Origin: Bispira polyomma
Lineage: Eukaryota
NCBI GenBank assembly: GCA_965649765.1
Contig: OZ287754.1
Span: forward strand, 16,244,001-16,308,000
Direction of reading: 5' to 3'
DNA: 64,000 nucleotides
A program made the translations under genes and the position numbers. The notes beneath the pieces were generated by a model. That model saw only the letters and a list, made by a program, of their open reading frames with translations, was not told the origin of the DNA and did not search any database. Positions 301 through 27,200 of the stretch are shown in pieces. How positions within the stretch are numbered: position 1 is the first letter of the stretch; each line of letters begins with the position of its first letter.

Positions 301-875
301 TGTGTGTGTGATGCCATCATCCTTATTGTTTGTATGTTTTGGCTTTGGTTGTAGTGGTGTGTTTAATAATTTAAACTAAAGTGTAACAAATCTGATATTC
401 CCTGATTTTGATTTGCAAACAAATTTGGTGTGTGTGAAATAACATTTTTTCTGTTATTTGAGAATAAACCCAATTAATACTGGCTTTTGTACATTATTAA
501 GAAGAAGAGAAAAACCTGTGAGCACCATTACCTGCAGTAGAATGGAGAGCCCAGATTGGCAAAAGCACTAAGACTGTACACACATCCCTCTTTCATCATC
601 TCATATAGTTCAGGATGTGCACAATCATCTTCAATCATAAAGGGTGTTTATTCATTGTATTGATATTAAGCATACAAGTCCACGTTACCAATTTTAAGGC
701 TGTAGTCACCTAACAGCCCTCCTACTTTGTGTGTGATGCCACATCGTTATTGTTTGTATGTTTTGGCTTTGGTTGTAGTGGTGTGTTCGATAATTTAAAC
801 TAAAGTGTAACAAATCTGATACTCCCTGATTTTGATTTGCAAACAAATTTGGTGTGTGTGAAACAAAATTTTTTA
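301..875 (+). repeat. ~145-bp direct repeat (301-451 and 728-875) flanking exon 14
   Basis: Two near-identical copies of gtgtgtgatgcc...tttgcaaacaaatttggtgtgtgtgaaa. Confidence 0.9.
532..628 (-). CDS. Exon 14 (domain 7A) DCAHPELYEMMKEGCVYSLSAFANLGSPFYC
   Basis: Same length as exon 12 (97 nt) and clearly paralogous (DC....YE..KE.CV.....F.NLGS..YC). AAG acceptor, GTAATG donor. Confidence 0.83.
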
Positions 876-3800
876 CCTATCTTCCTACCCTGCTTCACTT
901 CTCTCTGTCATAAACTTGAAGAAAGGCAACAGACTAACTGTTTCTTCGATTAGACGCACCAGAAAGGTGGGATCCAGAGCTTTACCCATTGCAGCTCCCT
1001 TGTTATGGAACAGTCTCCCAGTTGACCTCAGATCAGTAGATACACTTATTGGTTTTAGGAAAAGCTCAAAACTTATCTTTTTAACCTTGCCTACCCACCT
1101 TAGTTTCCCTTCCTCAAATCTTTCCTTATGACCTTGCTATGCCTATGGATTTTACGATTGGATCACTGATTCTGCAGTTGTGCTTTAAAAGATGCCTAGC
1201 ATCAAAAAAGTTTATTAAACATGCATAATAATAATAATAATTACACACCAGATCACTTTGTAAGAGATTAAACAAGAGGTAATAATGACACTGAAACTCT
1301 ATTAGTCATTATATGTTACTGTAAATATTTCAGTATGTCACTTTGATTGACACGGAAAGGTAGCAGATATATGGTTATATTGACAAAACTTTAATTATTA
1401 AATGTTTTTCAACTAGGCTTTGAAATCATTCTCTGTGGACATTTTACTCTTATTGGTGTTTTGGGGGAAGCTATGGCTTTTGAAGGGAATTTCAAAAAAT
1501 GTAAACAAAATGGATAGTCAATAGATATGTAAGTATATTGTATTAGTAGCAATAGCCTCAATTTTATGTATAATAAAATAGTAAGGGTAAGCTAAATTCA
1601 TGTGTCTTTGAACGTTCTTCTCCTGGGGTTGGTGGGGCATGTCACCGGTGATGTCAAAGTATCACGGGGGTCAGGCCTCAAGCCCATTCAAAATTATTAG
1701 GATACCAGGCTAATTTCGTATTTGTGATGTCAGCTAGAATTCCCAAGCCTAGCTAGTTCACAAGAAATCACCCATACTTTCTCAGTTTGACTTAATAGAC
1801 AAGTCAGATGTGAAGAATTGCCCTGGAGTGATTTTACTATTTCTGGCTTCCTAGTAGTAAACATTTATAACTTTGGTGAGTGTTTACAGATATTACAATG
1901 ACTACTTAACAATTTCAAATGCATTCTGAAAGCTAATTTACCAAGATAAATTTTCAGAACCTATATGTTTAAGGGCCTTTCTGGAATGTTCGGCCATCTT
2001 TGATTTAACAAGAAATCCCCTAGTCTATATATATTTTTGAAGATGTCTCAAAAAATCAACAGTTCAGACCTGTTTTCATTCATACTGAAATATCAGACTA
2101 TGATTGATGGTTATTTTGATATTTGATTTGTTGGGCCAGCACTTTGCTGGACTTCAGTATAGCCCAAAAGGCTATAAGATAATGTATAGCAAAATATATA
2201 ATGGTCTCACTCCCACTCCCACTTACAATCATAACATGAGGCACAAAGTTAGTAATAGGTAGACTTGGAGACAGTGATACCCAGTGGTGGTTCTCTGGAT
2301 TCATAAAATGGGCATGCAGCAAATATAAACAGAATGGTCAAACCCAAGCACTGTGAGAAATATGGATAAAATCAGGTTTTATCTTTACAATTCAATTGAT
2401 ACCAAATCTGAATGAGGATATCTCCATCATACATCAAACATGCTGAATACATTATTTTGTGATTCTAATTCATATATCTAAAGTGGGGGTTCCACATTCA
2501 GGATTTGCTCCCCGAACTTCCCGATTTTGAGGTCGGGGACACGCACAGGGAGGTTGGGGAGCAAAAACGGGGTGGTCTGGAAGGTCGTGAAGAATATAAA
2601 CACATATTTTAAGCTTAGTTTGTCATTTTGGTTGTCCTGATAACGGAAATCAGTTCAAAAGTTGTTTACCTTTGCGACATCAAACCCACTTCCGGTTCAG
2701 TTCATGTACGCGAACGAAGAAATTATTTGCTGTTATTTACAACAAACTTTCATCAAAAATGAGGTTTAAACAGGTATTATTTCTTTCATTTCATAAGGTC
2801 ATCTCATTTTGTCATATATATTATATACAATAACAGTCCGGACTTTGACTTTTCTACATTCGATCTTTATGGTCAGGGATCTAAATCCGTCAGATCCTAT
2901 TGGCGATACGTTCGATCCTAGGGTGATACGTCAGATCCTATCACCAGTAAAGTAAGATCGGGGTCGCGAGCCCGTCAAAACGGGGTGCAATCAGTTCGAT
3001 CGGCAAGGTCGGGACACATTGTCATTTTCCCGTCCAAAAAGTGGATTTTATTGATTTTTTCGCCCCCACCTTCCCGACTTTAAAATTGGACCCATTTTGC
3101 CGATCGAACTTGAAAGTGGAACCCGCCCTTTAGATACAAAAACAAAATTGATGCACTTGAGGTACATAAATTTAATAAATCATTTTAATAATAATAATAA
3201 TAATACAATTAAAACCTCTCCAACTCAATACATTACCAAAGAAAGTGCTGCAGAGTGCAGACAACTGGTTCCTGCTGTATTGTATCAATGCTTCAGCTTC
3301 CATCTGCTTGTTGTCGCCACATCGTCCTAGGAACACAGCCTTTCTCATACATGCTTCTCCCAACATCAGCATTGGACCTTGTAATCTACATTTGAATAGA
3401 AATTATATCCATGTTCTCACACACTCTTGGTCAAAAGAGAAGCACTATTTGATGCACCTGGACCTGTTAATAAATTAGTTACTCTATAAAAATAAATAAA
3501 TAATAATAATACTATCAAAAAGATATTATGATGGAAGGTACACTAAATGAGATTGAAGTATGTGATAGGATATCTATATCACACTACAGATTTATTATAT
3601 GTACGTTGTAACATTTTTGTTTGACAATTTCTGCTTTCATGTTTATCAACAGCAACAAAAAACCACTTTTCCCTAATGTGCTGGTTATCTGTAAACATAA
3701 ATAGTTTACATATTTGTAGAGTCATTCTATTGATTAGTTAAATCTTAAAACTAAAGATTATTGTTGTTGAAGCCGTTGCTTCAGGTCAACCCATGTACTT

Positions 3801-6800
3801 TCCATCAGTCTTAAAGGCTACTAACTTGATAAGAGGAAATGGGCTCTCAGCCTCAAAGTGTCGCCCCAATAAGAAGGTTGGGAGTAGTTGTTTAACTTAT
3901 GCAGATCCTATTGAATGGAAGAAGTTCCCTACTGATATCTGCAATCATACAAGCCTAAGTGCTCTCAGAAGAAATCTGTTAAGGCACACTTATTCTCCTT
4001 AAATTTGTTAAATTTAGTTGGGGTTTATGTCGCTTTCAACAGCTCAGGTCATATCATGACGGCCAGACTCAATGGTAGAAAAACCCAGTGCTGTAATTCA
4101 CCTACTTACGGCGAGTACCTGACAAACTGTTCCACATGAATGAATGGATGCGATTTGAACGCAAATCAGTGAGAGGTCAGTCATTGCGAAGCAGGTGCTT
4201 CTAACCACTAGGTGGCTCGTTTACCATAGTATGCTACAGTTTTAACTTGCCATTTCTTAGTGTTTTAACTGGCCATTTCTCAGTGTTTTAACTAGCCATT
4301 TCTCAGTGTTTTCACTAGCCATTTCTCAGTGTTTAACTTGCCATTTCTCAGTGTTTTAACTTGCCATTTCTCAGTGTTTTAACTTGCCATTTCTCAGTGT
4401 TTTAACTGGCCATTTCTCAGTGTTTTAACTGGCCATTTCTCAGTGTTTTAACTGGCCATTTCTCAGTGTTTTAACTTGCCATTTCTCAGTGTTTTAACTG
4501 GCCATTTCTCAGTGTTTTAACTGGCCATTTCTCAGTGTTTTAACTGGCCATTTCTCAGTGTCAGGTCTAACTGGTTCTATGTCACAGCAGTTTGTTCGTA
4601 AAAGGTTTCCTCATTAGAAACGGACTATGATTTTACCAACTTTTGTCAATGATGTTAGAAGATGCCTGTAATCAATTAGGCACATTAAAAATACCATATC
4701 ATTAGACACTCCAGAGTGTAAAAACCCCATTATGGTTAAATCTATGGACGGTGATCCTTAGAGGATGTCTTGACATTAATTGATGGCCATATAGAATGCA
4801 AACGCCATTATTACCTGCAGTAGACAGAACTCCCCAAATTGATAAATAGGCCAAACTGACTAACACAGCTTTCTTTTATAGCTTCATAGACTACATCAAA
4901 TTCACAGTCATCTGAAAATAGGATTACTGATAATTGTGTTTCAACATTTCAATTGTCATAACTGCTTGGTATTAGCCAGTATACTCTATAATGGGGTGGG
5001 ATTATGAGTGTCATTGTTATGGATATATAAACAGTTGTTAAAATTCTAAATTTAATTTAAAAAACTATAACATTTATGCTGCAAGAGCCAGGTTCTCTTA
5101 TAGGGTCATGGCAGTTAAGCCCTGCAAATTGTTACTAACAAAATATACATAGATCTACATATGTACACGACTTTATGACAACTGATTACCACTTAAAAGC
5201 ATGTTTATTCTTTGACAGTGATGTTCATTCTATAATTTCAGTGCCATCTTTTTTACAAAATTTAGTTACTAGCTGTCACACCACGAACAATTTGGAATTT
5301 ATTTGAATTTTAGATGATTTTTTTCTGCAAGATTACTAATTCTTACTTAAGTTTTTCAAATTTTTAAATTTTGTATTATTTTCTCAACTTTGTGGATTGT
5401 TTTAATCAAACTTTCTTCAACATTACTCTTCAGTCCTTGAAGCATAAACGAAGAAACCCTTAATTGTTTGTAATCTCTAAAAACATTGCAATTGAAAGGA
5501 GGTATCCTGAAGACAGGCGACTCTACAATTCATTAATGGTATTTCAAATTCAAATTTTGTTTTGGCGGTACATGAATGGACTAGACCATGATTAAGTTAC
5601 ACTGCTTATCAGACTAATAGAGACTATTGCCACACGTCATTAAAAATATTTATTACTTCCACAAAGTTTATTGTAGTTGTGTTTCCCTGAGTCTATTAAC
5701 GTTTGTGCTGGAACGGATAAATCAGCATCACATTTCATCTCAGACAGACGTCCCAAGATGCAATTCTCTGTGGCAACAAGTGTAGTCGTTATGGTACTAA
5801 AACATACAAAAATGAGTTTTGAACATGGTACAGAGTACACAAAGATCATTTTGTTCAATGTTCAACATAATCCCCTCACACTAAACCTGTAGCTTCAGAA
5901 TCCATTTGAAAGATTTCTGGTCGCCTGTTTGATTTACCATATATTATTTTCAAAACATATAAAGTTTAATAAAACTGAAAAGAGCATATGTTCTGCGTGT
6001 AACCCAAGTACAAAAATGTATTAAAGTGTTTGACCAAATATGATCTGACTTATTCATTAGGTTTTCTATTGATAAAGTGCCTAATTGCTGAATTATAAAG
6101 TTCAATTATTTAATTGTCCCCAACCCAGCAAATACAAGGTAAAATTAGAAGTTTCAATGAATTTTATTACACAATGTTGACTGAGTCGTAAGAGATCATA
6201 CAGCATAAAGTCAATTTTGTCCAGGTTCCAATATATATATTTTCAAAGTCTGTTTCACATCATACCTGCAGTAATTGAGATCTGCTGGGTTTAAAGTCAG
6301 GTCTTCAATAAGGCCACTCACAGCCAGCAAACAGTGACCTATGGTTTCAACAGCCATAGGTATGGTCTCGCATTCCATACCTGAAAAAAAAGCTTCTGAT
6401 AAAGTGTGGCAGAATCAACAGAAGTTTTCTTGTTGAAAAATATTAAAAACTCATTTTCCTTTTGATACATTTTAATCTAAAATACGATTTTTAGGTCCCT
6501 TTATTAAACAGTAGAGGGGGGGAACCAATGCTGAATCATTGTAAACCACAGACCTACAGCAATAACCTGACAAAGTTACCCTCATCACAGAACATGGGGA
6601 TTTAAAATCATATTGGATATGTGAAAATAAACACCTAAAACAAAAATGTCATCTTTAAACAACACGGCCATTGGGTGTTTTAGCTATGGTATGTGAGAAT
6701 TGAGAGTTTTGTTTAAAATGCCATCATACCGGCATCATTTACAGTACAACTTATGATCACAGAAGACCATTGTGAAACACATACCTGAAAACAGTGGAGC

Positions 6801-9800
6801 AAAGAAGGCACCTATGGCCTGTTGTAGAATGTAGGCAGAAGAGGAGGCCACACTAGGTAGAGTCATCAGACAGGTCTTGTCATGCAGTGCAGTGATGATA
6901 CAGGATACAAGCGAGACGAGATAACTCATGGAGGATCTGCAGAGAAAATTTTTGGGAAAAAACGTATCAATTTTAGACTTAACTCAAGTGAAGGGTCCTG
7001 TGGTTACTTATGTTGATGGAGAGAACCCTACATTTGTGACCATTGATTGTCATAGAGCTTTTAGTGCTTAAGTTAAATTATATAGTTTTATTGTATATCT
7101 TCCCTCTCACTTGATTTTGTTTTAAATACCAAGATCTCAGATGTAATTAGGGCCACGGTGGCCTAGTGGTTAGCAAGCATTGCGCTTCACAATCACTAGT
7201 CTCTCACCTCTGGGTGGCATGAGTTCGAATCCCGTCCATTGCTCTGTGGGAAAGGTGGTAGTTCCTTACTGTGGGTCGCTGGTTTCTCTGCAGAACCTTG
7301 ACCGACTGTATGCAGTGTTTCCTCCAGCGTTTCCAACTACCCGTCCCAATATAACCTACTAAAAGGTACTAGAGTGGACGTTAAATATCCAAATTCAAAT
7401 TCAAACTTTTGCCTGAGATTTTTGAAGAATATGACAATATATTAAAGAAAAGAAATATTTCTAAATAACATATAATGTGTGTCTTAATGTACAATAAAGA
7501 CATCTAAAATATGGCCACGTATTTGAATCGGATACTGAATAACATTTAAACATTACATAATTTTTATCACATTGTCAAATTGTAAATTGTACTTAAAAAA
7601 TATTAATTTTGTTTTTAATAGTTTGTTCAAATTTACCTTTGTTTGCCATATTTTTTAGCAATTAATTAGTTCATATTTTGTGAAATATTTGTTTACTCTG
7701 ATTTACTGTCATTAAGAATTCTGTTGTCAGATAGTAAGTTTAACTGAAAATTTATTTTCCTGTTACAAACCACAATATAACTAAATGTAACCCACTGACA
7801 TCTAAGATCTTGATGTCATCTACAGTTTTGACAAATATAGCAAGTACAAATAATTACATAGTCATCAGAACATATTTGTTATCAACACATATATCAAACA
7901 ATAATGTGGCAGTTGAGTTTAGAAACATTGGGTTTTGGGGGAAACTTATCCCCCTTAGTGCACGTCATGTACATCCTAACATCCTTCCATATGAACTGGC
8001 TATGTTTTTGAACTACACGATTAGTTAATTGATTTTGTTGTTGTGCTTTGATAGATGCCTCGCATCACTAAAGCGAGTTTAAAATACAAGATCATAATGT
8101 AACTTACTCCACTGTCAAGTCCGGCATGTTGGCAGCGTTTAGTTCCATGCATGCAGTAACGTCTAGTCTTGTCTGATTCATTTCCGACTGACATTGCTCT
8201 GATAAATATAATAATTAATGGTCTGGTCACACCTACACGTGCTAACGTCCCCCAACGTACCTAAGTAATATACACTGAAAACGTGGTAGTATTCTATCAA
8301 AGTGATGTAATTTCCATAAAGGGGTAGTCGATTGTAACGTTTTGTGACGTTTCGTGACGATGTTGGTACTTGTACACATGAAGAGGGAACAAAAAACGGA
8401 CCCTTTACTGGTAGGATATTATTACCAACTACTACATAGAAGTAATGTACTGCTACTTATGGCTGCGTTCTGCTGCCTTCTCCTACTTAGTGAAACTTTC
8501 GTGGCTAACGGAGACGATCTCGCTACTTACTGGGACTTCCTCGCTACCCACTACTACATAAAGCTACTTACTGATACATCTATGCTACTTTCGGAAACGT
8601 TCGGGGACTAACAGAGAAAGGGGAGAAACGGGAGCTGTTTCTGTAGTGTTTCAAACAGTTTGAAACACTACAGAAAAAAGATAAAACGGAGACATTTCCG
8701 GAAAGATATCATCTGTCGTAAAACATCTCAAAATGTAAAGAAACGATCACAGAAGGGATCCTCACTTCCTACTAAGTTTCAAAACGTTTTCCAAATTCTC
8801 ACAACGTGACACTAACGTAGCTATAGAACGTGTAGGTGTGACCAGGACATAAAGCAGTAATAACTTAAATTTATCTTGTGAATCTAAATGTGTGTAGCTT
8901 TTTCGTCTGATATCACCTCTATTGAGGTCTCCTCTGACTTTACAGTTTACACCGTGACCTGGGGTCTTCCACTGGGTTCTTTCACTAGTCATGCTGCCAC
9001 ATACAGCCCACAAAGACTTACACCCTTTAGTGGCCAGGTAGCCATTTATACACCTGGGTAGAGAGAGACAACTTTGTGTAAATTACCTTGTGCAAGGATA
9101 CAAAATCCAAGCCTGCAGGGAGGATCGGACCGGGGCTCTCAGATTACTCAGATCCAAAGTCTGACACTCTAACTGGTAGGTCACAGAGATCATCTTAAGA
9201 TAGATTCATACTGCTGTGAATATCAAACCATCTACGGTAGTCTCCCTGGTTACGACTTCCATCCGCCCACTATTTTTGATTTCCGATTAACGTTTTGGGT
9301 TTGTTGCGCCTTAGAATTTGTTGTACAAAGATTAAGCGCTATAAAAGTACGACTAGATTAGATTAGATTGGATTAGAACTTTACCCAGTTCGTAAAGATT
9401 TGTTTTGCAAAAATGGGCATTTTAGTTGAAACAAAACTATTAACTGCATAAATTATCATTATAAAATTAAGTAGATAAATTGATGGTAAACTATTAGTTG
9501 ATTATTTGTGGGGGAGGGAACAGTACCTAAAATTAAAGTTACAAATTCGAAGTGACAATTGTGATACCATAAATAAAAATCTACCCGACACTTGTATAAA
9601 AATGCTCCGGGTCTGGTCTTACCGTAACTAGCGCAAGCTGCTGAGTAATAATTCCAGGCCAAATTTACCAGGTGGTCCCTCAATACACTCATTCCAGAGG
9701 TACAGCCGCCTGCTGATGAAGCCCAACTCAAACACTGCCCAAAGCTCTGCACTGCTTCAGGGGCTTCACTGTGATCAGATACAGAAAGAAAATGACTGTA

Positions 9801-15800: not shown

Positions 15801-18800
15801 GGCCAAGCAGTCAACTCAGCTATAAATAGAGATCAGTATTTAGATACTCCTTTTATTCTCACGCTTCCCATAGTAGATGACATTACTCGGAATATTATCA
15901 AATTAGGTAAAGGAGCATTATTATACAAGTTAGGCTATCGCCATGGCAGTGCAATATTTCAAAGACTCAGTGACGCGATTCGGTTTATGATGACGTCACA
16001 AGGTCATGACGTCATAAACTATATAGATGACATCATTGGTTACGGCCTTTCAGACACAATTGGCGACTCATTTGAAAAACTAAAAGAACTCTTCCAAAAA
16101 TTAGGATTTGCCATTAGTCAGAAAAAAGAAGTTCCACCTCGTACCAAAGTAATATGTCTAGGGGTTCTAGTGAATACAGAGGATTTTACTTTGTCCATAC
16201 CAGAAACTAAACTCACTGAGATAAAGCAAATATGTCATTCATGGACTAATAAAAAAGCATGCACCAAAAAAGAGCTTCAATCGCTACTTGGTTCATTATT
16301 ATATATCTCCAAATGTGTCAAAACTTCACGAGCTTATCTTAATAGAATGCTAGACACCCTAAGGGGTTCACAAAATACTCAGGAAATTAAGCTTGATATA
16401 ACATTTCATCAGGACCTCAATTGGTTCAACACTTTTCTCACAAGCTTTAATGGCATGGCTTTCTTTGAACATAGACTGGTAACAGATCAGGTACACCTAG
16501 ACGCATGTTTGCAAGGCCTAGGTGCTTGCTGTAATAATGAAGTTTATACCAAAGAAATTCCGCTTGGCTATAGAAATTACACCATAGTCCATCTCGAAAT
16601 GATTAATATCTTAGTTGCAATCAGAAATTGGAAAAATCAATGGGCTGGACGCAAATTGCTTGTACATTGTGACAGTGTATCTATTCTAAATTCAGGAAAG
16701 ACATATGATCTTACTCTGGCAGCAATGACCAGAAACATTTTTATGGAAGCTGCAAAGGCACACATAGAGTTAAGAACTATACATATCCTAGGTAAAAGAA
16801 ACGTTACAGCTGACTTACTCTCCAGATGGGCTATTACCCCTAATAATGAAGCAAAATTAAATGAATTAATGCAAAATCCTACTTGGATAGAGGTCAACGA
16901 TGACCTCCTAGAGGTAAAGTGGTCAATTTAGCTTTATAAATTTTTCAGGCTCTGCAACCTGGGTGTCAAAGCTTGCAGAAAGAGCAGTCAATAGAGCACA
17001 TCAGGCTTTTCGCCCTTCTACACAAAAGCATACGCAGCCATGTTCAAAGTATTTTTAGCTTACTGCTGTTTTGCTAACATCTCAATTTACAATATTACCC
17101 CCACATCAGTGCTAGCCTTTCTAGAAGTATTAGTAGTGAACAACACGTCACATACTTCTGTTTCAAATTACCTCGCCGCCATTAAGGCTAGTATGTCATT
17201 GTAGGGTCTCCAAATTACTGCTTTTGCAGAGCAAAGAATTAAATATTTTCAAAAAGCTCTGGTTCTAAACAAACCATTCAAAGCCAAAATTAATGGCATT
17301 ATAGACATTGATTTATTGCAAAACATAGCCACCATCTGTGATTCCATGTATATGGGGCAAATTTACAAGGCAGCCTATCTGCTTGCCTTCTTCTCTTTCC
17401 TCAGAATCTCTAACTTAGTCCCCCACTCTCAAGCTACTTATTCACCATTGCACCAGTTAGCTAGGGCTGACATTATCTTCGCCCCTCCAGGTGCCCATAT
17501 AATCATAAAATGGACAAAAACTTTACAAGCTAGAGACACAATAAAAGTCATTAAAATTCCATCACTGCAAAATAAAACCATATGCCCAGTTACAGCCCTC
17601 AAAAATTTGCTGGCAATGACACCAGGCAGTAAGAACACCCCATTGTTCCAAATTAAAACTAATTCTCGGTGGATAACCCTTACTGACAGCAAAATACGTA
17701 GAAATCTTAAGGATATCTTGAGCAGACTAAACAAAACGCAAGCTAATATCACATTCCATACTTTTCGGCGCTCTGGTGCAACAATGGCCTTTAACGCCCA
17801 TGTTCCTCTTCAAGACATTCAAAGTCAGGGCATTTGGTCTTCTGAGTGTGTGTGGAGATATATCACTCAGGACCATGCTGCCTCTGACCAGGTAGCCCTA
17901 GCTCTCCAATCCCTTCTTAACCCTATTTCTACTTCCTAGTTGGGCCTTGGTGGTTATTGTCTTTGTTTTTACTATGATTTTTATGCTATAATTTGTAAAA
18001 TTTATTATATACTTAAAGCCACCTTATAGTCAAAACATTTCGTAACCTTAACTAGACAGATGTAAGGCTAAGGCCAGCAGAAATCATGTAATTCGTTAAG
18101 GTTACCTTAAATTTTGGTAAAGTTAAACTTAAACTTAAAGTTACATTAACCTTAAACTTAGTCGACACAAAGTCGCTCTTAAGATGAACTTAGACTAAGC
18201 TCTTAAAATGTTTTTCTTTTAAGGTGGCCTCAATTATCTTAGCAAAATTTTAACCAATTGTAACTATATGTGTAGGAATAGATTAAATATATATATCCCA
18301 ACTGCTAGTCTTTCTTGCAAGGTCAATTTCTTAAAAACTCAAGGTCAGGGCACTGTGCTAGGTAGACCCATCGGGGGTAGTGAGTTCAGTGCAGACCTTA
18401 AACTCTCTTACTAAAACCATTCTGCTTCAATGACCTTTGCATTTTATTGGATGGCAGTTGGCCTAGATTCTATAGCTATTCCCGCCAAAAGCCATAAAAC
18501 CTCACTTTAATTTAAGAAAGGGCAGAACGCCATTTTAGAAACTTGCAAATTTTCTTTAAACCCCACCCTCAGCCCCAACTTCACCTGTGTGGGCTCTTTC
18601 TTCTTCGCACCGGGAGCTCATATTTTCAACAGGAAGGCCTCTGTCTGGGCCACTTTACACCTCAGGCGCAGGGGCGGTGATGGTCTTAGGGTCGGGTCTT
18701 TGACCAGCAAGCAACATGGCTCTGCTGCAGGCTTTCATCCCGACAGTCCAGTATGGTCCTTTCAGGATCTTTCCTGTTTGTCTCCATCACTAATTACTGG

Positions 18801-21800
18801 GTAACACCAGGGTTCCTAGGAACCACTCTTATTTTAGAATTTAGCCCAGGCAGGTGTGGTCTGAATTCCACTTCATCAAATGTGTGTCAATTTATTGTTG
18901 TCAATTATTGTGTTTATATAAAATTGTCATTAATGGATGTATGAATGTATACAAAGTGTTAACAGTTAGTATGTTAGTTTCAGTTCAAGTCGAGGTCATT
19001 GACAACGGTATCAAAAAATGGCCAAGCAGCATGACAAGCAAGCATGACAGCAACCAAGCAAGACATGCAAGCCAAGCAACCAAGCAACCAAGCAGCTTCC
19101 TCTATTTATTATTGTATATTATACACTAAATTCCTTACTACACATATATTGACTTATACATGTACGGATCGCTAAACTTGATGTTAAGGGCTGAAATTTT
19201 CAGCCATTTAAGGCTTAGTGAGCTTTGAGATGGTGCCTTGGACTTTAAAGACATTGCAATATACACCCTTATTTTTATATACAGGTTTTTAGTATTTAGC
19301 TAGTTAGTGTATCTGTACTTTTACTTACATGGTTACTGTCTTTTTAATGTGGTTATTGTCTTTGTTTTTACTATGATTTTTATGCTATAATTTGTAAAAT
19401 TTATTATATACTTAAGGCCACCTTATAGTCAAAACATTTCGTAACATTAACTAGACAAATGTAAGGCTAAGGCCAGCAGAATTCATGTAATTCGTTAAGG
19501 TTACCTTAAATTTTGGTAAAATTAAACTTAAACTTAAAGTTACGTTAACCTTAAACTTAGTCGATGCAAAGTCACTCTTAAGGTGAACTTAGACTAAGCT
19601 CTTAAAAAAATTTTCTTTTAAGGTGGCCTCAATTATCTTAATAGATTAAATATATATATCCCAACTGCAAGGTCAATTTCTTACAAACTCAAGGTCAGGG
19701 CATTGTTCAAATAATTTCCTATGTTCCTTTGTTTACTTTACATACAGCACCCATCAATCTGAATCTAGTTGGGTTTTTAAAATTAATCATTTTCTTTGTT
19801 AACTTTGCAAAAAGTCAAAGATAGTTGAGGCTGACCTTAATCTCCCTCGTTTTAATTACTTAAACCCAATGAAGCTACGGTGGCACTTCATTCACTTATT
19901 GAATAATTCTGTAGATCTATTAACATAAAAAAAAATAATAATAACATTTCAAATTGTACTCTTTAAATACTGTGTTATCTGCAACATCAAGGTCACACTG
20001 AAGGCCACTGTTTACATATAGAACCCATCAATTTCAGTTTAGTTGGGTTTTATCTTGCTTTCAACAGCTTAGGTTATATTGCGATGGCCACATTTAAAAA
20101 ATGCAAGAAATCAGTGCTGAAGCACTGTGTAAACTACCAGTCCATGGCAAGTACCTGACAAAGTTTTTCCCACATAAAGGAACGAACGGGATTTGAACCC
20201 ACATTTGGTGAGAGGAGAAGTGACACTTTTAACCACAAGGCCACCAAGGCCCGTATAGCACTCACAAAGTCCTAATGTCCATTTTGTGTATACCAAGACC
20301 AAGACTTGTTAAGTGGTCATCCCGGACAATGTGTATACCTATCTTTAACCTGGATATAAGACCAGATCTTGTGCATCTCAAATAGAGTGATTTAGTAACT
20401 AGGATGCAAGGCCGAAAAATAATATAAATATAGCAGTGACAATGGCAATGTAGAGTTACCCTGTCCAGTGCATATTTTACTGTAACTCCACCATTTAGTG
20501 TGCATCATGGCCTTCATTACATAAATATACCACATGGCCATTGAGACTTACCTTGTCCAGTGCAAATTTCACTATAACTCCACAATTTAGTGTGCATCAT
20601 GGCCTTCACTACATAAATATACCACATGGCCATTGAGACTTACCTTGTCCAGTGCAAATTTCACTATAACTCCACCATTTAGTATGTATCATGGCCTCCA
20701 CCTCCGCCTTTGTGCTGGCATTGCATTTTTTCCCCTCTACCAAGGCCTTCTTCAAACACTTTGTGTACGTTTTGGTTATTCTCTTGGCATTCCTACAGAT
20801 CATAACAGTTACACACACCAATTGCAAATTTATCATACTAATGAATGCCGTATTAAGAAGGCGTCTGTGCAACAGAACACAGCTTTTAGTGATGTCACGA
20901 AAAATTATCTTATGGCATGACTCTCAGTTACCAAACAGATAATGTCAGAAAAATGACGGCTTGTTTATGAAGAAAAAAATGTTTTTTTTAAATTTTTTTG
21001 TTCATGCTCATTGTTAAACATAATGTGTTCCATACCCATATTTTTTATGGTTTTTTGTAGTGCAATACTTTCCTACCCTGATATTTTCAGACATAATATG
21101 ACATCAATCATCTGCCCAATTGAGCTCTCTATTATTAGTGTACGCTTGCAAATGCGACTCTCGGCTTGTGTTAAGAAAGTCAACCCTGGACCTCATGGCG
21201 AAAGTACACAGGAAACTAGACCGAATAATCTGTCTCTGTTTAGCGAGATTCCTTACTGATATTTTGACGATGGAATACACGAAATGGGACATAAGTAAAG
21301 CGTTTGAAATTTAGTGTGACATAAATGGCTGACAGAGCTGTGTCAATATATGTGATTATATCGGCATGAAATAACAGAAAATCGGCTACTATATCAAATA
21401 TAAGCAATGAGGGGATGTATTTATTTTGAACTGATCCTATCTAATATATATGCCGATTTTGGAAGCCGCTCTGTTGCCAATCGGCTACATCTGACTAAAA
21501 AGCCATTATTCGCGACAGAATACTCGGTTTGTTCATCTATACAAGGTCATTTGGTATTAATTTTTTTTTGTCTTATCCTATTGATTAAAAAAAATTTAAA
21601 AATCGGACCAAGAAACTTTTGGCCTTCAAAATTATATACCATGGCAGATCTTCCACAGAAATAAAGATGTGTACATGCCAACATCCACTTTAGACATTTT
21701 TTTTACAAAAAGGTCACCACATCAATGTCAAAAGCTCTTATGACTTAGCTAAGACAATAGTCTTGCGTTTAACACTGGTCTTAGCAAAAGTTCAGTCTAA

Positions 21801-24800
21801 GACTCAAGACCTTTTGTGAATCTGGCCCCAAAGCCGAGCCAACATTGTGTTGCACTCTTGAGCAAGAAAAGAAGTAGCTTTTACTCCAGATATTGAACCG
21901 AGCTGTGTTTACCATTTTTAAGAGAGTTCAGTTATTATTTAGTCAAGTTTTAAATGGAATACAGTGGGTATATTCATCTTGGACCCATCTCTTTACTCTC
22001 ACTTACCCTCCATAGACATCTTTCTTCTCCACATCCCTCCCGAACCACAAATTTTCTTTAGAAACGAACCATGATTTTACCAACTTTGTCAATGATGTTG
22101 TGCTTTAGAAGATGCCTGGCATCAGTTAGACGAGTTAAAAGTATATCAATGTCAAAGCTCTAATGCCATGTACTGTATTTTTTTTATTAGATGAATGCTA
22201 TGATACATGTAGCATACAGTTATGCCGTCGTCATACTGAGCACGTCCATGTTACGTTTAAAATTTCGTAAACATAAGAAAACGGAAATAAACAAAGTGAA
22301 AATTTATGGAAATGTAGCAAAAAAACAATGGTTGGGCCGTTTTGTACACGTTCTGTACACATATGTACACATTTGTACACGCATTTAACATATTTTATTA
22401 GCCGTTTCAATTATCTTTGGACTGTTAGCCACATTTTAAAATATGTTACCTACATTTTTAAACACATTTCAATCTCGTTCTCTTTAGTTTAAATATTATT
22501 TGAATGTATAGTACGTTTAACTCCTTTAAATCATATACACATTGAATATGTGCCATACGTTACCCGCAAGCGCACCAACTGTTTGAGGAAAATTGTACGA
22601 AATTTGAGACGTTCACAGGCGTTTTCCTTATTAAGGGTCATCTTACTCACGCATGCTTAAGTGTGCTTACGTTTACTTAAGTATACTATGTTCACTACGC
22701 AAATGCTTACATTTCACCTTACCATCTTTTGTCCATAATCAAAACCTAAGCCCAGTGGGACCATGGCATTATTGTTAGATATGTAAACTTCAGTCTATGT
22801 TTAGTATTAGGTTCACAGGAGTCAACATATCACCGAGAAAACAAAAAACTTACTGGCACAGATCTTTTCCGACAGAAGTTTGCAGCTTTTCAATGTTGGA
22901 AATGTATCTGGCCTCGCATTGGTTCTTTTTGCTGATGTATTTTCCTGGCTTGTTACATGCTTTCAAAGGAAAGTATAAAAATATGTTAAAATATGGAAGC
23001 TCTGGCAAACTTTACTGATAATTATAGTAATATAACACGTTTTTTCAGGCCTCATTGGTTTTTAGTTCACTGTTTTTTATGCCCAAGGGCTTTTCTGATT
23101 TATTTTTTTGGGGCTGCTGAAACCCCATAATGCCATACAAAATCATGTGATTGTACCATTGTAGAAAGATGGATAATTTATTTATTATAGTGACATGTAC
23201 ATATTAAAATACAATAGCATAATTTCAAAATAATTTAAAACAAAGATGTACCCAGCCCCACATAGACTTATATGTCACTATTCCACAACTAGTGTGAATA
23301 CAATTACATATTTAATAATCAACAACTACAAATAGAATATGCTATATCTTCGATTTTTAGAAAAACAAGATTCTTTATAAAATAACTAATACTGATTTTC
23401 GATTTTCCAAAGAAGAAACTAGGTATTTTGACAGCTGTTTCTGATAATTTTAATTAATATATCAAAATTGATCATCATAAGTCATATTTACGAATGTAGA
23501 ACATGTAACAGATATAATACTAAACCCTTTTTGTCTCGACAAATTGTAGATAACATAATTTACATAGTCGTTGTTCTATTTTTAATGGCTGTAGCCACCT
23601 GAAACTGTATGATTAATTATGGTAAATGACATTGTTTTAACTTCTATAGCGCAACAATCGACGGCCAGGAATCCTCTGTGGCACAAATCCCAATCAGTAT
23701 GCAAAAGAATAGTCTGACACGAGAAAATGTTCGTGATCAGAATTCAGTTGTGACTAGGAGACAAATGTTAAGGCGAATTGATACAGATGTGTTTTGAGCT
23801 TGCTTTTTCCTAAAGCCTGTAATCCTTGTCCCTGCAGCCAGTTTTTTTGGGGAAAAACTACACATAGAGGGACGAATTCGTCTGGTAAGATAGATAGTAG
23901 ACAGTATAGATGATAAGTAGGAAGGTTACTGCACATAGACAGTTTTAAAAATACCTTGACTTTTATCTTGAATTTAATATGGAACTTAGTAGGCAGATAG
24001 TGCAATTTTGTAAGCAAAGGTGGCATGTGAGTTCTTTTGAAATTGTTAAGCTTGTCTATTTGCCCTTGTCAAATTACTTTCAGTAGTGAGTTACAGTAAT
24101 CAAGTAGACTTGCCACTGGGGCATTTGCAACTGCAACAGCATTTTCGATACTTAGGTGCTACAATGCTGCAGTAGCAAGATCGACAGATGTTTCAAACAT
24201 GTTTCTTGAAGGAGAAATCAGAGTCAAAAGTGACTCCCAGGATCTTGTCACTGTCAACAGGAAAGGTGCTGTTACCACAGAGTTGCTGGAAAGAACTTTA
24301 AAACCTTTTTCCTCTTATGTTTGGAGCTAATAACTAGAAATTCTGTTTTGTAATAATTCATTAATGATTCAATTGATATGAGGTATTAGAACGCTGTTTC
24401 AGGACCAGATAGCTGGTGCGAGGATATTACTTTTCCATGTAGAGTTGTGTACAGTGAAAACATCAGGGGTCGGAAGACAGAACCCTGTGTGACAGGAGAT
24501 CGAAAGGAGGCTGCTTGGCTCTGCTTACACTGATGATTTAATCACGGTGGTCTAAATAAGATTCATGGATGTGATTGATGGACAAGTGCTTATTTATTTG
24601 AAGTGCAACAGCCAGTCCATAAGATCAAGTAATATCAATTGTGAAGACACATGAACACACATAGGTTATCATATAACAACTTTATTTTAAAACACTGATT
24701 TGGGTAAAACACTGACATGTTAAAACATTCATATTAGTACTACTGTTAGCACGTTAGTTGTTAGCTATACACTTTATTACAACAGTTGAGGAGAATTTGA

Positions 24801-27200
24801 GGTCACCTTGACTTCTCCTGAATGTATGAAAACCAAATTCAGCAGGTTCCAGATCCATGGATACTATAAGTGATTTGAAAACGCTTCTGACCTTTGAGGC
24901 TGATAACATCATTAATTTGTCACTAGAAAAAATTTGAAACAAAGCGGGTTTCCAGAGATTTTAAGAAACTTTATCATTGACTTTATAGCAGAAATAGGAC
25001 ATAAATTGGAGCCTCTTAACTCAGGAGGTTGTACCACTTGATATAAACCTAAACGCTGCATGTTCTTAGCATACTTACTAATGATATGCATACCAGGCTT
25101 GCCAAAGACTATGTACAACACCACAGGTAATCTTGTTTTGTCACAAACTGATACCACTGAGCATACTAAAGAGGCTAAACGGTAGAAACCAAAAAGGGCT
25201 ACTACAAAAAGTGCCTGAAACACTGGTGCATTAGAAAGCTCTTTGGTCTTTTTAAGAAGTTCTGTTAACATATCTAAAGTGATGATACCTTTAATGTTTA
25301 GCAACAAAGGAGCATTAGCTCTTACAGATCTTATCATTAACTGCACTTGTTTACTCTTGAGTGCTAAAGTTGGCCAAAAAAAAAGACATTTTGCAATTAA
25401 TTAGCTCCCAGTCCATTTTAAGCCAAGAATTCAACATAAGCTACAACAGTTACTTCATCATGTGGAGTGACCAAGTCAACAGCAACCATAAAGACCAGGA
25501 ACTGACGAAACCTGGCAGCATAGGCGGATGCGGTTTGTAAAAATCAGAACTTCAGTATGTCTCCTTTCCCGCAGTCCACATGCAACAAGTATACAGCAAA
25601 TTTACTCCTAGAATAAATGAATGTGGGGGTTTGTATAGGCAGAAAATATTGCGGGAAATACATAGACAGTTCAAGCCACAATTAGCTCACACCCATGCTC
25701 AGACTCTTGCTGGTCAAAAAACTCACTCTGTTCAATGTGACCGACATTTTGATACAAAGTCTAGCCAGAAACCTAGTCTTTCTAGGGCTAACAAACTTAT
25801 CCTCATATGTACTGACCTATAATGCTAATATTTACTCGTATGTGTTCATTTCTTGATCAGCTTAGAGGCTCAAATTTGCTACTGGTCTGTAATTTTAAAG
25901 ATTATTTCCATCTAAGTTTGGAGTAGAGGAGTAACATTGGCAGTTCTGAAAGACTTTGAGAAGCAGCCCGCTTAAAGCAAGTAGTTTTTATGTTTGTTGT
26001 GGGAGAATATCTATACAATCCTTCAGTAAGGAAGTAGGTATTGAGTCCAGGTCGCATTTAGATGGTGATAAAGTAATGATTTTAGGGACGTCATCGCTGA
26101 GTATTCTAATCTTATTTAAGGTAGATGGTTTGTGTGGTGGAGTTAGGATGTTGAGAGAGGTGGATGGTTTGAAAGCCATACAGATTTTATCAATCGTCTA
26201 AAACAAAATATTTTTAAAACATTTTGGCTGCTTAATTAAGGCTGGTACAGTCCGGTAGAACAGGATCTCTAATTTTATAGAGGATCTTTTCTATAGATTG
26301 CCATAATTTCCCAGAGTCGGTGCTGTTTTTGGAGATGAGGTAGTAACAATGATTTTTTTAGCTTTTGATAGGAGCCTACTATAGTGGTTGACAGCAGCTC
26401 TAGAATGTGATCTGTCTATCCTGGATTTGTATGACACAATATTTTCTCATTGAACCTTTTTTCGTCTCTTGGGATTGAGGATTTCTAAAGTGATCCAGAT
26501 GCTGTCCGGGTGCGACAATGCAGTTTTGTCGTGGAAAGGTAGGCACGATAGTTAAACATTTCTCCAAGGGCAGTGTTATATTAATCACACAGATCAATTA
26601 CATTTGTCCTTGGGTTTCTGACAAGTTGGCAGGATGCAAGGTCAGCTTTAAACCTGTCATTGTTGATTGTATTTGTTTTTCTAAATTATAATAGTTTCGC
26701 CCACTGTGTATTTATGAAGAAATTTAATGGAGAGAGCGACATTGAAATGATCAGTAATACCCTTTGCCATGTATGATTCTACAAAGATGGAAGAGTCTGT
26801 CTTTGTTAATACTAAATCTAAAATGTGAGTATGAATGTGGGTTTACTTTTTGATGTATGTATTAAATGTGGATATATTTAATATTTCCATCATGTCAGTC
26901 CAGTCAGAAGCAAAGGAGGATTTTGAACAGAGGCTTAGCGGTCTATAAAATGTCAAGAGGCAAAAAGAAAAGGAACCATGTGATATTTTTAGGTAGATGG
27001 ATTCTGAAGAAGCAAAACTAGGAAGATTGATTTTAACCACATCAAAAATCTTTCTTTAAAAAAAATTACTATTTTTTCCTGTTTCTATTCTAAATGGTAA
27101 AACCGAACCCCTACTCTAAACTGAGCTACAATTTTAACTTACCCTCATTTAGGCCAGCCCCCAAGAAAATCACAAGAACTAAACTGCAAAAGAACTTCAT
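532..27200 (-). CDS. Multi-exon gene for a secreted protein with >=7 tandem six-cysteine domains (3' end lies outside the window)
   Basis: 14 exons with GT..AG boundaries and fully compatible phases: 27143-27200, 22854-22959, 20644-20792, 13513-13636, 11272-11411, 10593-10716, 9623-9768, 8108-8198, 6785-6936, 6266-6380, 5657-5796, 4815-4911, 3237-3385, 532-628. They splice to 1688 nt (562 codons + 2 nt) with no stop. Cys spacing is conserved between the repeats. Confidence 0.88.
876..1241 (+). mobile_element. 3' end of an L2/CR1-like LINE
   Basis: ORF remnant GSRALPIAAPLLWNSLPVDLRS matches the typical L2 ORF2 C-terminus; (TAA)n tail. The same 3' UTR recurs at ~4620, ~8020, ~13020, ~22060 and ~44310. 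Confidence 0.75.
2481..3130. mobile_element. Non-autonomous DNA transposon (MITE) with ~25-bp imperfect TIRs
   Basis: Left AAGTGGGGGTTCCACATTCAG vs reverse complement of right end AAGGGCGGGTTCCACTTTCAAG; flanked by TA on both sides. Confidence 0.7.
3237..3385 (-). CDS. Exon 13 (domain 6B) LQGPMLMLGEACMRKAVFLGRCGDNKQMEAEALIQYSRNQLSALCSTFF
   Basis: tgtAG acceptor, GTAATG donor, phase 2-1. Confidence 0.88.
4010..4215 (-). mobile_element. tRNA-derived SINE
   Basis: Reverse strand has tRNA A/B-box-like head (cctagtggttagaagc...gttcaaatc) and a tail related to the SINE copies at 20036-20252 and 36765-36995. Confidence 0.65.
4237..4561 (+). repeat. 23-bp minisatellite (CAGTGTTTTAACTGGCCATTTCT) x ~14
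   Basis: Directly visible tandem array. Confidence 0.95.
4815..4911 (-). CDS. Exon 12 (domain 6A) DCEFDVVYEAIKESCVSQFGLFINLGSSVYC
   Basis: ttttcAG acceptor, GTAATA donor, phase 1-2. Confidence 0.88.
5657..5796 (-). CDS. Exon 11 (domain 5B) TITTTLVATENCILGRLSEMKCDADLSVPAQTLIDSGKHNYNKLCG
   Basis: gttttAG acceptor, GTAATA donor, phase 2-1. Confidence 0.86.
6266..6380 (-). CDS. Exon 10 (domain 5A) MECETIPMAVETIGHCLLAVSGLIEDLTLNPADLNYC
   Basis: tttttcAG acceptor, GTATGA donor, phase 1-2. Confidence 0.88.
6785..6936 (-). CDS. Exon 9 (domain 4B) SSMSYLVSLVSCIITALHDKTCLMTLPSVASSSAYILQQAIGAFFAPLFS (lacks Cys6)
   Basis: ttctctgcAG acceptor, GTATGT donor, phase 2-1. Confidence 0.85.
7151..7405 (+). 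mobile_element. tRNA-derived SINE (full length)
   Basis: GGTGGCCTAGTGG A box, GAGTTCGAATCCC B box, (AAATTC)n tail; second copy at 14003-14232. Confidence 0.85.
8108..8198 (-). CDS. Exon 8 (domain 4A) QCQSEMNQTRLDVTACMELNAANMPDLTV (lacks Cys3)
   Basis: tttatcAG acceptor, GTAAGT donor, phase 1-2. It is required to bridge exons 7 and 9 in frame. Confidence 0.8.
8219..8849. mobile_element. Harbinger/PIF-type MITE
   Basis: TIRs TGGTCTGGTCACACCTACACGT / ACGTGTAGGTGTGACCAGGACA with TAA target-site duplication. Confidence 0.85.
8880..9190 (-). mobile_element. tRNA-derived SINE, second family
   Basis: Reverse complement matches the + strand copy at 49433-49760; partial copy at 13810-13990. Confidence 0.75.
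9228..9377 (+). mobile_element. L2-like LINE 3' tail with (TAGAT)n end
   Basis: Near-identical to the reverse complement of 59735-59885. Confidence 0.8.
9623..9768 (-). CDS. Exon 7 (domain 3B) EAPEAVQSFGQCLSWASSAGGCTSGMSVLRDHLVNLAWNYYSAACASY
   Basis: tcacAG acceptor, GTAAGA donor, phase 2-1. Confidence 0.88.
10256..10610. repeat. ~117-bp tandem repeat x3 that duplicates the 3' end and donor site of exon 6
   Basis: ccacttactg(g/a)cagt(c/a)aaccaactgga at 10352, 10469 and 10585. Confidence 0.9.
10593..10716 (-). CDS. Exon 6 (domain 3A) CQNESAFQAAVAVCMGSLLDYRDSLPVDIASNPLLQLVYC
   Basis: cctttAG acceptor, GTAAGT donor, phase 1-2. Confidence 0.88.
10932..11090 (+). mobile_element. tRNA-derived SINE
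   Basis: ggtggcctagtggg A box, then tccttgggcaag core-like motif. Confidence 0.65.
11272..11411 (-). CDS. Exon 5 (domain 2B) AMSQSTKDLEQCWRDTITSANCSQLKHNDIDILTRLAWQNYEFTCE
   Basis: ttttAG acceptor, GTACTG donor, phase 2-1. Confidence 0.88.
11867..12538 (+). repeat. 224-bp tandem repeat x3, nearly identical
   Basis: aaatcagatactgcaag recurs with a period of 224; only ~2 substitutions, in copy 3. Confidence 0.95.
13513..13636 (-). CDS. Exon 4 (domain 2A) CQDEDLYYAGLVSCQDTYNETMQAQFAVQEVHSNYLELFC
   Basis: attcAG acceptor, GTCAG donor, phase 1-2; lies within ORF 13467..13667. Confidence 0.88.
14003..14232 (+). mobile_element. tRNA-derived SINE (5'-truncated copy of 7151-7405)
   Basis: High identity to 7176-7405. 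Confidence 0.85.
15069..15350 (+). pseudogene. Truncated gag of element 1 (N-terminal C-x2-C-x3-H-x7-C finger), fused by deletion to pol
   Basis: CRACKTSHRKPINDNC matches CSVCSGRHGRPVGKKC of element 2. At ~15350 the sequence jumps to pol QNKQKFGFIP (QNSGKYGFIP in element 2). Confidence 0.8.
15402..16931 (+). pseudogene. RT-RNase H of element 1, missing RT motif A
   Basis: NYIDD, DACLQG, LEMINI and TADLLSRW are present. 34 codons including the D of K-x-DISRAF are missing relative to element 2. Confidence 0.88.
16949..17939 (+). pseudogene. Tyrosine recombinase of element 1
   Basis: FLRISN, WTKT, FHTFRRSG, GIW and WRY motifs; frameshift near 17025 and a TAG at ~17201. Confidence 0.88.
20036..20252 (-). 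mobile_element. tRNA-derived SINE
   Basis: Reverse strand reads ggtggccttgtggttaaa...gggttcaaatccc. Confidence 0.75.
20455..20697. repeat. ~92-bp tandem repeat that duplicates the 3' end and donor site of exon 3
   Basis: ttacc(t/c)tgtccagtgca...catcatggcc at ~20456, 20548 and 20640. Confidence 0.9.
20644..20792 (-). CDS. Exon 3 (domain 1, B half) NAKRITKTYTKCLKKALVEGKKCNASTKAEVEAMIHTKWWSYSEICTGQ
   Basis: ctgtAG acceptor, GTAAGT donor, phase 2-1; lies within ORF 20609..20872. Confidence 0.88.
22854..22959 (-). CDS. Exon 2 (domain 1, A half) CNKPGKYISKKNQCEARYISNIEKLQTSVGKDLC
   Basis: ttcctttgaaAG acceptor, GTAAGT donor, phase 1-2, C-x12-C. Confidence 0.85.
23690..27050 (-). mobile_element. 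Decayed L2/CR1-like LINE (EN + RT), interrupted by a YR fragment
   Basis: Remnants TFYRP (EN), SKCDLDSIPTSLLKDC, LDYCNSLL and LTKLHYLP, with many stops and frameshifts. Confidence 0.75.
24800..25537 (-). pseudogene. Tyrosine recombinase fragment of a Ngaro-like retrotransposon
   Basis: TASAYAARF, FGFYRLASLV, LCPISAIK and FGFHTFRRS; homologous to the YRs of elements 1 and 2; contains stops and frameshifts. Confidence 0.85.
27143..27200 (-). CDS. Exon 1 of six-Cys repeat protein: signal peptide MKFFCSLVLVIFLGAGLNE(A)
   Basis: ACAATG start, hydrophobic core and GTAAGT donor in phase 1. Splicing gives ...LNEA|CNKPGK, a plausible cleavage site. Confidence 0.8.

Follow-up and report, generated by a model that had tools for sequence, protein, structure and literature searches.

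Several described systems bear comparison with the cysteine-rich protein encoded on the minus strand of a 64,000-nucleotide stretch of the Bispira polyomma genome (C7:16244001-16308000, where C7 is contig OZ287754.1 of a 75-contig assembly of 1.04 Gb; the whole stretch is called the window below). Neuritin (NRN1/CPG15) is a small extracellular six-cysteine domain, predicted to be helical and directly followed by a glycosylphosphatidylinositol (GPI) signal; its cysteine order, two close pairs and then two spaced cysteines, is presumably similar to that of the repeated module found here, and we use it as a lead only. Unlike neuritin, which has one domain, the present protein has twelve modules ahead of its putative GPI signal, and the cysteine spacings differ. 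GFR-alpha and GAS1, which act as co-receptors, are likewise GPI-anchored and built of tandem all-alpha disulfide-rich domains. However, the ten cysteines of the GDNF domain follow a pattern differing from that of this module. The GDNF fold has five helices and five disulfides; our half-module models show one long helix plus a hairpin, and the module has only six cysteines. The saposin-like units of prosaposin are also helical modules, of ~80 residues, with six cysteines and three disulfides, arrayed in tandem in a secreted precursor, but their cysteine spacing and nested connectivity are at odds with the pattern C-x12-C...C-x12-C-x9-C-x22-C and with the Cys3-Cys6 bond proposed below. Finally, our half-module models suggest an analogy, purely structural, to spectrin repeats, in that a chain of helical bundles with very short linkers would make an elongated rod; spectrin, in contrast, is intracellular, free of disulfides and unrelated in sequence.

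A single-copy gene of 26 exons and its orthologue

The window is AT-rich (33-44% G+C) and abounds in open reading frames (ORFs) of transposons. Scattered among these, an earlier reading of the window by itself (the original prediction) had traced 14 small minus-strand exons that would splice, through 13 introns, into a stop-free frame of 562 codons for a secreted protein. Direct reading of the codons and flanks located all 14 with exact boundaries and bore out this frame in every particular. The exons E1 to 7A sum to 1688 nt (562 codons plus 2 nt), with no in-frame stop and no stop formed by a split codon, and all 13 introns are of the GT..AG type, with donors mostly resembling GTAAGT or GTAATG and with pyrimidine-rich acceptors. 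The signal-peptide exon E1 has phases 0-1; thereafter A exons (1-2) and B exons (2-1) alternate strictly. The proposed extent of at least seven modules in 14 exons, in contrast, was incomplete: all these exons are real, but 12 of the 26 exons lie below the first base of the window, and the gene consists of one signal-peptide exon, 12 two-exon modules and one C-terminal exon (Table 1).

Profiles of the B exons and of the A exons, matched against the whole assembly, each recovered further exons just below the window and no other locus, indicating that the gene is single-copy in this 1.04 Gb genome. The remaining exons were delineated in 80 kb examined below the window, and the phases and canonical splice sites of 7B to 12B match those of the exons inside it. 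A hidden Markov model iterated from modules 1-8 failed to recruit modules 9-12, which were instead found by their cysteine pattern and splice phase. The last exon encodes DYSGYLTTTETSGQS..., followed by serines and a hydrophobic end of 11-13 residues, and an AATAAA polyadenylation signal lies ~185 nt downstream of the stop. The full model spans ~50.8 kb (C7:16220437-16271200, minus strand), and its predicted product has ~1090 residues and 14 N-glycosylation sequons.

As the introns are filled with transposons and the public runs that contain the stretch show no spliced joints, it might be argued that the chain of exons is a chance pattern or the remnant of a dead gene. However, when 144 kb were scanned for the cysteine pattern combined with AG and GT sites in phase, the minus strand gave 22 matches (10 A-type and 12 B-type, the B-type match at C7:16197651 being false), whereas the plus strand gave none of either type and shuffled sequence a mean of 0.2 of each. 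Furthermore, the reading frame is kept through every one of the 26 exons. The most telling argument comes from a second species. An exhaustive HMMER search with the 12 B exons against 1.84 billion representative proteins produced five matches at E <=0.001, of which three (P0001, P0003 and P0005) are repetitive bacterial-type proteins that we rejected as low-complexity matches. The two true matches (P0002 and P0004) are ORF fragments of 47 and 57 residues, both from ENA ERZ22147071, a so-called metagenome assembly; the contigs from which they come (2.9 Mb and 32 kb) are eukaryotic, although their genes were called in prokaryotic style. The fragments belong to an orthologue split between ctg24189l and ctg31476l; both the end of the 32-kb contig and the start of the 2.9-Mb contig fall within the block of modules 6-8.

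This orthologue is colinear with the B. polyomma gene, and all its A and B exons agree with ours in order, phase and splice position. Its signal-peptide exon has 19 codons and ends in G before a GTAAGT donor, and its last exon has the same acceptor phase and encodes DYSGYITTT...TSGQA ahead of a hydrophobic end. Alignment of the two DNA sequences matches only the exons (~69-74% identity) and shared interspersed repeats, the introns being unalignable. Over 770 aligned codons the amino-acid identity is 44.5%, the proportions of nonsynonymous and synonymous differences (pN and pS) are 0.349 and 0.674, and the ratio of the two rates (dN/dS) is ~0.27 with synonymous sites saturated. The gene is thus conserved under purifying selection. 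An orthologue of identical architecture with such values effectively refutes the explanation by chance or decay, to which we attach next to no credence, and what we describe is a real, single-copy protein-coding gene that was previously unannotated.

The exons of modules 1-5 and 9-12 are 24-56% identical to their positional orthologues, as against at most 32% for the best paralogous exon; the only exception is exon 4A, with 24% identity to its orthologue versus 26% to the paralogue 3A. This one-to-one orthology by position implies that the array already had its order before the two species diverged. Modules 6-8, in contrast, make up a block whose units resemble one another and number three in B. 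polyomma and no fewer than five in the second species; this difference in copy number indicates that the two-exon phase 1-1 unit is indeed subject to duplication. Accordingly, the earlier description of the protein as lineage-expanded applies to modules 6-8 only; the other nine modules are orthologous one to one, and the gene itself is single-copy. The locus further illustrates how a gene can escape annotation: its exons of 90-150 nt are dispersed among transposon-filled introns, and the search of 1.84 billion representatives with the 12 B exons gave no match to an annotated full-length protein of any organism.

Architecture of the module and its relation to known families

The module is ~85 residues long and follows the pattern C-x12/13-C-x15-25-C-x12-C-x9/10-C-x22-C. 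Its A exon carries Cys1-x12/13-Cys2 and ends just past Cys3, where a codon is split; its B exon begins 12 residues ahead of Cys4 and carries Cys4-x9/10-Cys5-x22-Cys6. Linkers between modules measure 2-6 residues, and a comparison of the A half with the B half using hhalign gave no sign of internal duplication. The near-invariant spacing first noticed in the window holds (C1-x12(13)-C2, C3-x12-C4, C4-x9(10)-C5 and C5-x22-C6), the exception being module 4, which lacks Cys3 and Cys6 in both species. The notion of a symmetric phase 1-1 module of two exons was likewise confirmed, and the variation in modules 6-8 supports it as the unit of duplication.

The searches and folds described in this section were run exon by exon or by half-module, and their negatives hold at that level. 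AlphaFold2, applied separately to the A and B halves with 25-26 natural sequences per half, models the B half as a helical hairpin (predicted local distance difference test, pLDDT, 93.5) with helices at residues 2-20 and 24-45, in which Cys4 occupies a mid-helix position, Cys5 the turn and Cys6 the end of the second helix. The A half is modeled as a helix of 21 residues that starts at Cys1 and extends beyond Cys2 (pLDDT 76), followed by a variable, lower-confidence stretch as far as Cys3. These models support the proposal, made from the cysteine spacing, of helical modules stapled by disulfides. In the hairpin model Cys3 is placed just before the first helix, beside Cys6 at the end of the second, and these are the two cysteines jointly missing from module 4 in both species; hence, the natural reading is a Cys3-Cys6 disulfide that would close the open end of the hairpin. 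Cys1-Cys5 and Cys2-Cys4 might then form the other pairs. The module would accordingly consist of a long helix and a helical hairpin stapled by three disulfides.

No named family could be assigned to the module when it was first noticed, although a loose likeness to the neuritin, RGM N-terminal and DUF19 domains was remarked upon, and our searches leave it without one. Pfam scans of ten individual exons (1A-3A, 5A and 1B-6B) at E up to 10 yielded no relevant family, and SapB gave no match among them; an ADAMTS_CR_2 match on exon 1A was at chance level. Sequence profile searches of the PDB with both halves found no match, and a feature-based search of the ESM Atlas no usable one. With the B-half model, Foldseek against the PDB and a shape search of the Atlas retrieved only generic helical hairpins (best Foldseek E ~2). 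A literature search for a described counterpart protein returned nothing relevant. In whole-genome searches, the NRN1 model (PF15056, six frames) gave only three weak matches (E >=1.8), none on C7:16.22-16.27 Mb, and DUF19 (PF01579) two weak matches, both on other chromosomes; GDNF (PF02351) and RGM_N (PF06535) had no match at this locus. As the GDNF and RGM_N models match other loci above their cut-offs (Table 1), the profile method does work in this genome.

These results bear on the idea that the module is a far-diverged offshoot of a known superfamily of extracellular, helical, cysteine-rich domains (neuritin/NRN1, the GDNF domain of GFR-alpha/GAS1, or saposin-like), in which case the gene would be a relative of a known family of GPI-anchored co-receptors. 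The GPI-type C-terminus, the all-helical halves, the presence of six cysteines in ~85 residues and the tandem array would all suit such an origin. However, the NRN1, GDNF, DUF19 and RGM_N searches miss the locus while two of these models find their targets elsewhere, and neither Pfam, nor PDB profiles, nor the exhaustive protein search, all run with single exons or halves, provide a family, so that we consider this kinship unlikely. It is conceivable instead, and we put this forward only tentatively, that the module founds a new extracellular domain family, a disulfide-stapled helix plus hairpin encoded by a symmetric unit of two exons and confined to one invertebrate lineage, of which twelve copies would form a charge-polar, GPI-tethered rod. 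Were the module truly without relatives, it would be a new building block among the few extracellular helical disulfide domains, and a strictly ordered long array would have been kept for a very long time, with ~44% identity between species and nine of the 12 modules in one-to-one correspondence. Such a rod would also represent an extracellular, covalently locked counterpart of the helical rods of the spectrin type.

C-terminus, charge polarity and a putative role at the cell surface

In the two species alike, the last exon reads DYSGY[LI]TTT...TSGQ[SA]... with a hydrophobic end and has a phase-1 acceptor. It specifies a Ser/Thr stretch, the small residues S-G-Q-S/A and a terminal hydrophobic stretch, after which hardly any residues follow. 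At the other end of the protein, the predicted signal peptide and extracellular routing are upheld by a hydrophobic 19-codon E1 that retains its length and phase in the second species and by sequons at nine identical exon positions in both, seven of the nine in modules 10-11. The sequons NAS, NET, NCS, NES and NQT that had been listed for the window are all present in E1 to 7A. The combination of a signal peptide with a conserved small-residue motif ahead of a terminal hydrophobic stretch suggests that the product is probably a GPI-anchored cell-surface protein rather than a freely secreted one.

A different fate for the C-terminus would make the product an unanchored, secreted protein with a structural role in cuticle, tube, mucus or egg coat, its tail being removed or serving as a short transmembrane segment. 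Matrix proteins of invertebrates commonly contain disulfide-rich modules in long arrays, and the brevity of the hydrophobic tail (11-13 residues here and ~13-18 in the second species) would be in keeping with this. However, S-G-Q-S/A is conserved at a fixed distance from the terminal hydrophobic stretch, arranged as in a GPI signal and not as at the end of a matrix protein, and the modules contain neither low-complexity nor cross-linking motifs; a structural role of this kind accordingly appears rather improbable.

The net charge of the modules is also conserved in its distribution. Module 1, which had been singled out as Lys-rich, carries +10 (+5 in the second species), and module 2, singled out as acidic, carries -10 (-6 in the second species). 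Modules 10, 11 and 12 have net charges of -14, -19 and -18, as compared with -12, -13 and -14 for their counterparts in the second species. Conservation of this polarity suggests a role in surface recognition or adhesion involving an anionic partner. The explanation that we favor, and regard as likely, is that the gene encodes a glycoprotein with a cleavable signal peptide, twelve helical cysteine modules, a Ser/Thr stalk and a GPI signal, which would act in membrane-tethered recognition or adhesion. The twelve modules, presumably rigid and joined by very short linkers, would form a chain tethered to the membrane, with the basic module 1 at its distal tip and the acidic, heavily N-glycosylated modules 10-12 next to the membrane. 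The distal tip could then bind the anionic partner. A basic tip opposite an acidic, glycosylated base beside a probable lipid anchor offers a testable hypothesis of surface recognition in a poorly studied group of animals.

Certain points weigh against this proposal of a GPI-tethered recognition protein. The tail is short enough that it may act as a minimal transmembrane anchor, or the protein may occur in a released form. The gene model is drawn from genomic sequence: a search for RNA runs returned no RNA library, and the three public runs that contain the stretch are genomic contigs, with repeat-related joints only and no spliced joints; they confirm the assembly across exons 4B-6A with zero differences and are uninformative on splicing. 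The exon-by-exon handling weakens every negative on known families, including any relation at the level of the fold. Lastly, the paired loss of cysteines in module 4 is a single ancestral event, and the disulfide map depends on that event and on model geometry.

Table 1. Exons of the gene and other features at and beyond the locus. Window positions count from the first base of the window; exons from 7B onward are given as core codon ranges on C7.
Feature	Coordinates	Strand	Remarks
E1	window 27143-27200	-	ATG at 27200; 19 signal-peptide codons plus 1 nt; phase 0-1; G followed by donor GTAAGT
Exon 1A	window 22854-22959	-	phase 1-2; Cys1-3 of module 1; Lys-rich; orthologue L023:13766-13873
Exon 1B	window 20644-20792	-	phase 2-1; Cys4-6 of module 1; NAS sequon; orthologue 53-56% identical
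Exon 2A	window 13513-13636	-	phase 1-2; acidic module 2; NET sequon, also in second species
Exon 2B	window 11272-11411	-	phase 2-1; NCS sequon, also in second species
Exon 3A	window 10593-10716	-	phase 1-2
Exon 3B	window 9623-9768	-	phase 2-1
Exon 4A	window 8108-8198	-	phase 1-2; C1-x13-C2, lacks Cys3; same two features in second species
Exon 4B	window 6785-6936	-	phase 2-1; Phe at Cys6 position, also in second species
Exon 5A	window 6266-6380	-	phase 1-2
Exon 5B	window 5657-5796	-	phase 2-1
Exon 6A	window 4815-4911	-	phase 1-2; in variable-copy block of modules 6-8
Exon 6B	window 3237-3385	-	phase 2-1
Exon 7A	window 532-628	-	phase 1-2; final exon in window; gene continues at lower contig coordinates
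Exon 7B	C7:16243032-16243172	-	
Exon 8A	C7:16242436-16242525	-	
Exon 8B	C7:16241904-16242047	-	
Exon 9A	C7:16240794-16240916	-	
Exon 9B	C7:16237359-16237508	-	
Exon 10A	C7:16227311-16227427	-	
Exon 10B	C7:16225972-16226112	-	
Exon 11A	C7:16223609-16223731	-	
Exon 11B	C7:16222973-16223122	-	
Exon 12A	C7:16221786-16221914	-	
Exon 12B	C7:16221027-16221164	-	
Last exon	C7:16220437-16220540	-	phase-1 acceptor ~490 nt after 12B; 33 codons; stop
DIRS-like retroelement	window 15069-17939	+	1B-2A intron; 509-aa ORF with weak RNase H match; 207-aa ORF matching Phage_integrase (tyrosine recombinase)
Decayed reverse transcriptase of long interspersed element (LINE) type	C7:16238128-16239603	-	9A-9B intron; split over two frames; same strand as gene
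GDNF/GAS1-type domain elsewhere	C7:54306819-54307049	+	PF02351, 39 bits, above cut-off; positive control
GDNF/GAS1-type domain elsewhere	C2:105420285-105420503	-	PF02351, 24 bits, above cut-off; positive control
RGM_N match elsewhere	C2:87699146-87699274		above cut-off; positive control

Introns and interspersed repeats

Window positions 20452-20701 consist of 2.7 copies of a 92-bp unit (93% matches), which span the final 58 nt of exon 1B, the GTAAGT donor of this exon and the beginning of the intron. Two extra near-copies of the end of exon 1B and its donor therefore lie just inside the intron, where splicing could use them as alternative donors or they could be decoys; the 92-bp period is not divisible by three.

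The introns also house mobile elements, among them the retroelements listed in Table 1. An ORF related to the recombinase of the DIRS-like element, at window positions 24915-25400 on the minus strand, gave no Pfam match. An interspersed repeat of extremely high copy number recurs in the introns (window 7087-7424, 3876-4213, 14069-14232 and from ~8216). Its contig depth reaches up to millions, and its loose ends carry a GGTTCGA.TCC box like that of transfer RNA (tRNA); it is probably a tRNA-derived short interspersed element. Copies 71-78% identical occupy the introns of the orthologue in the second species as well.
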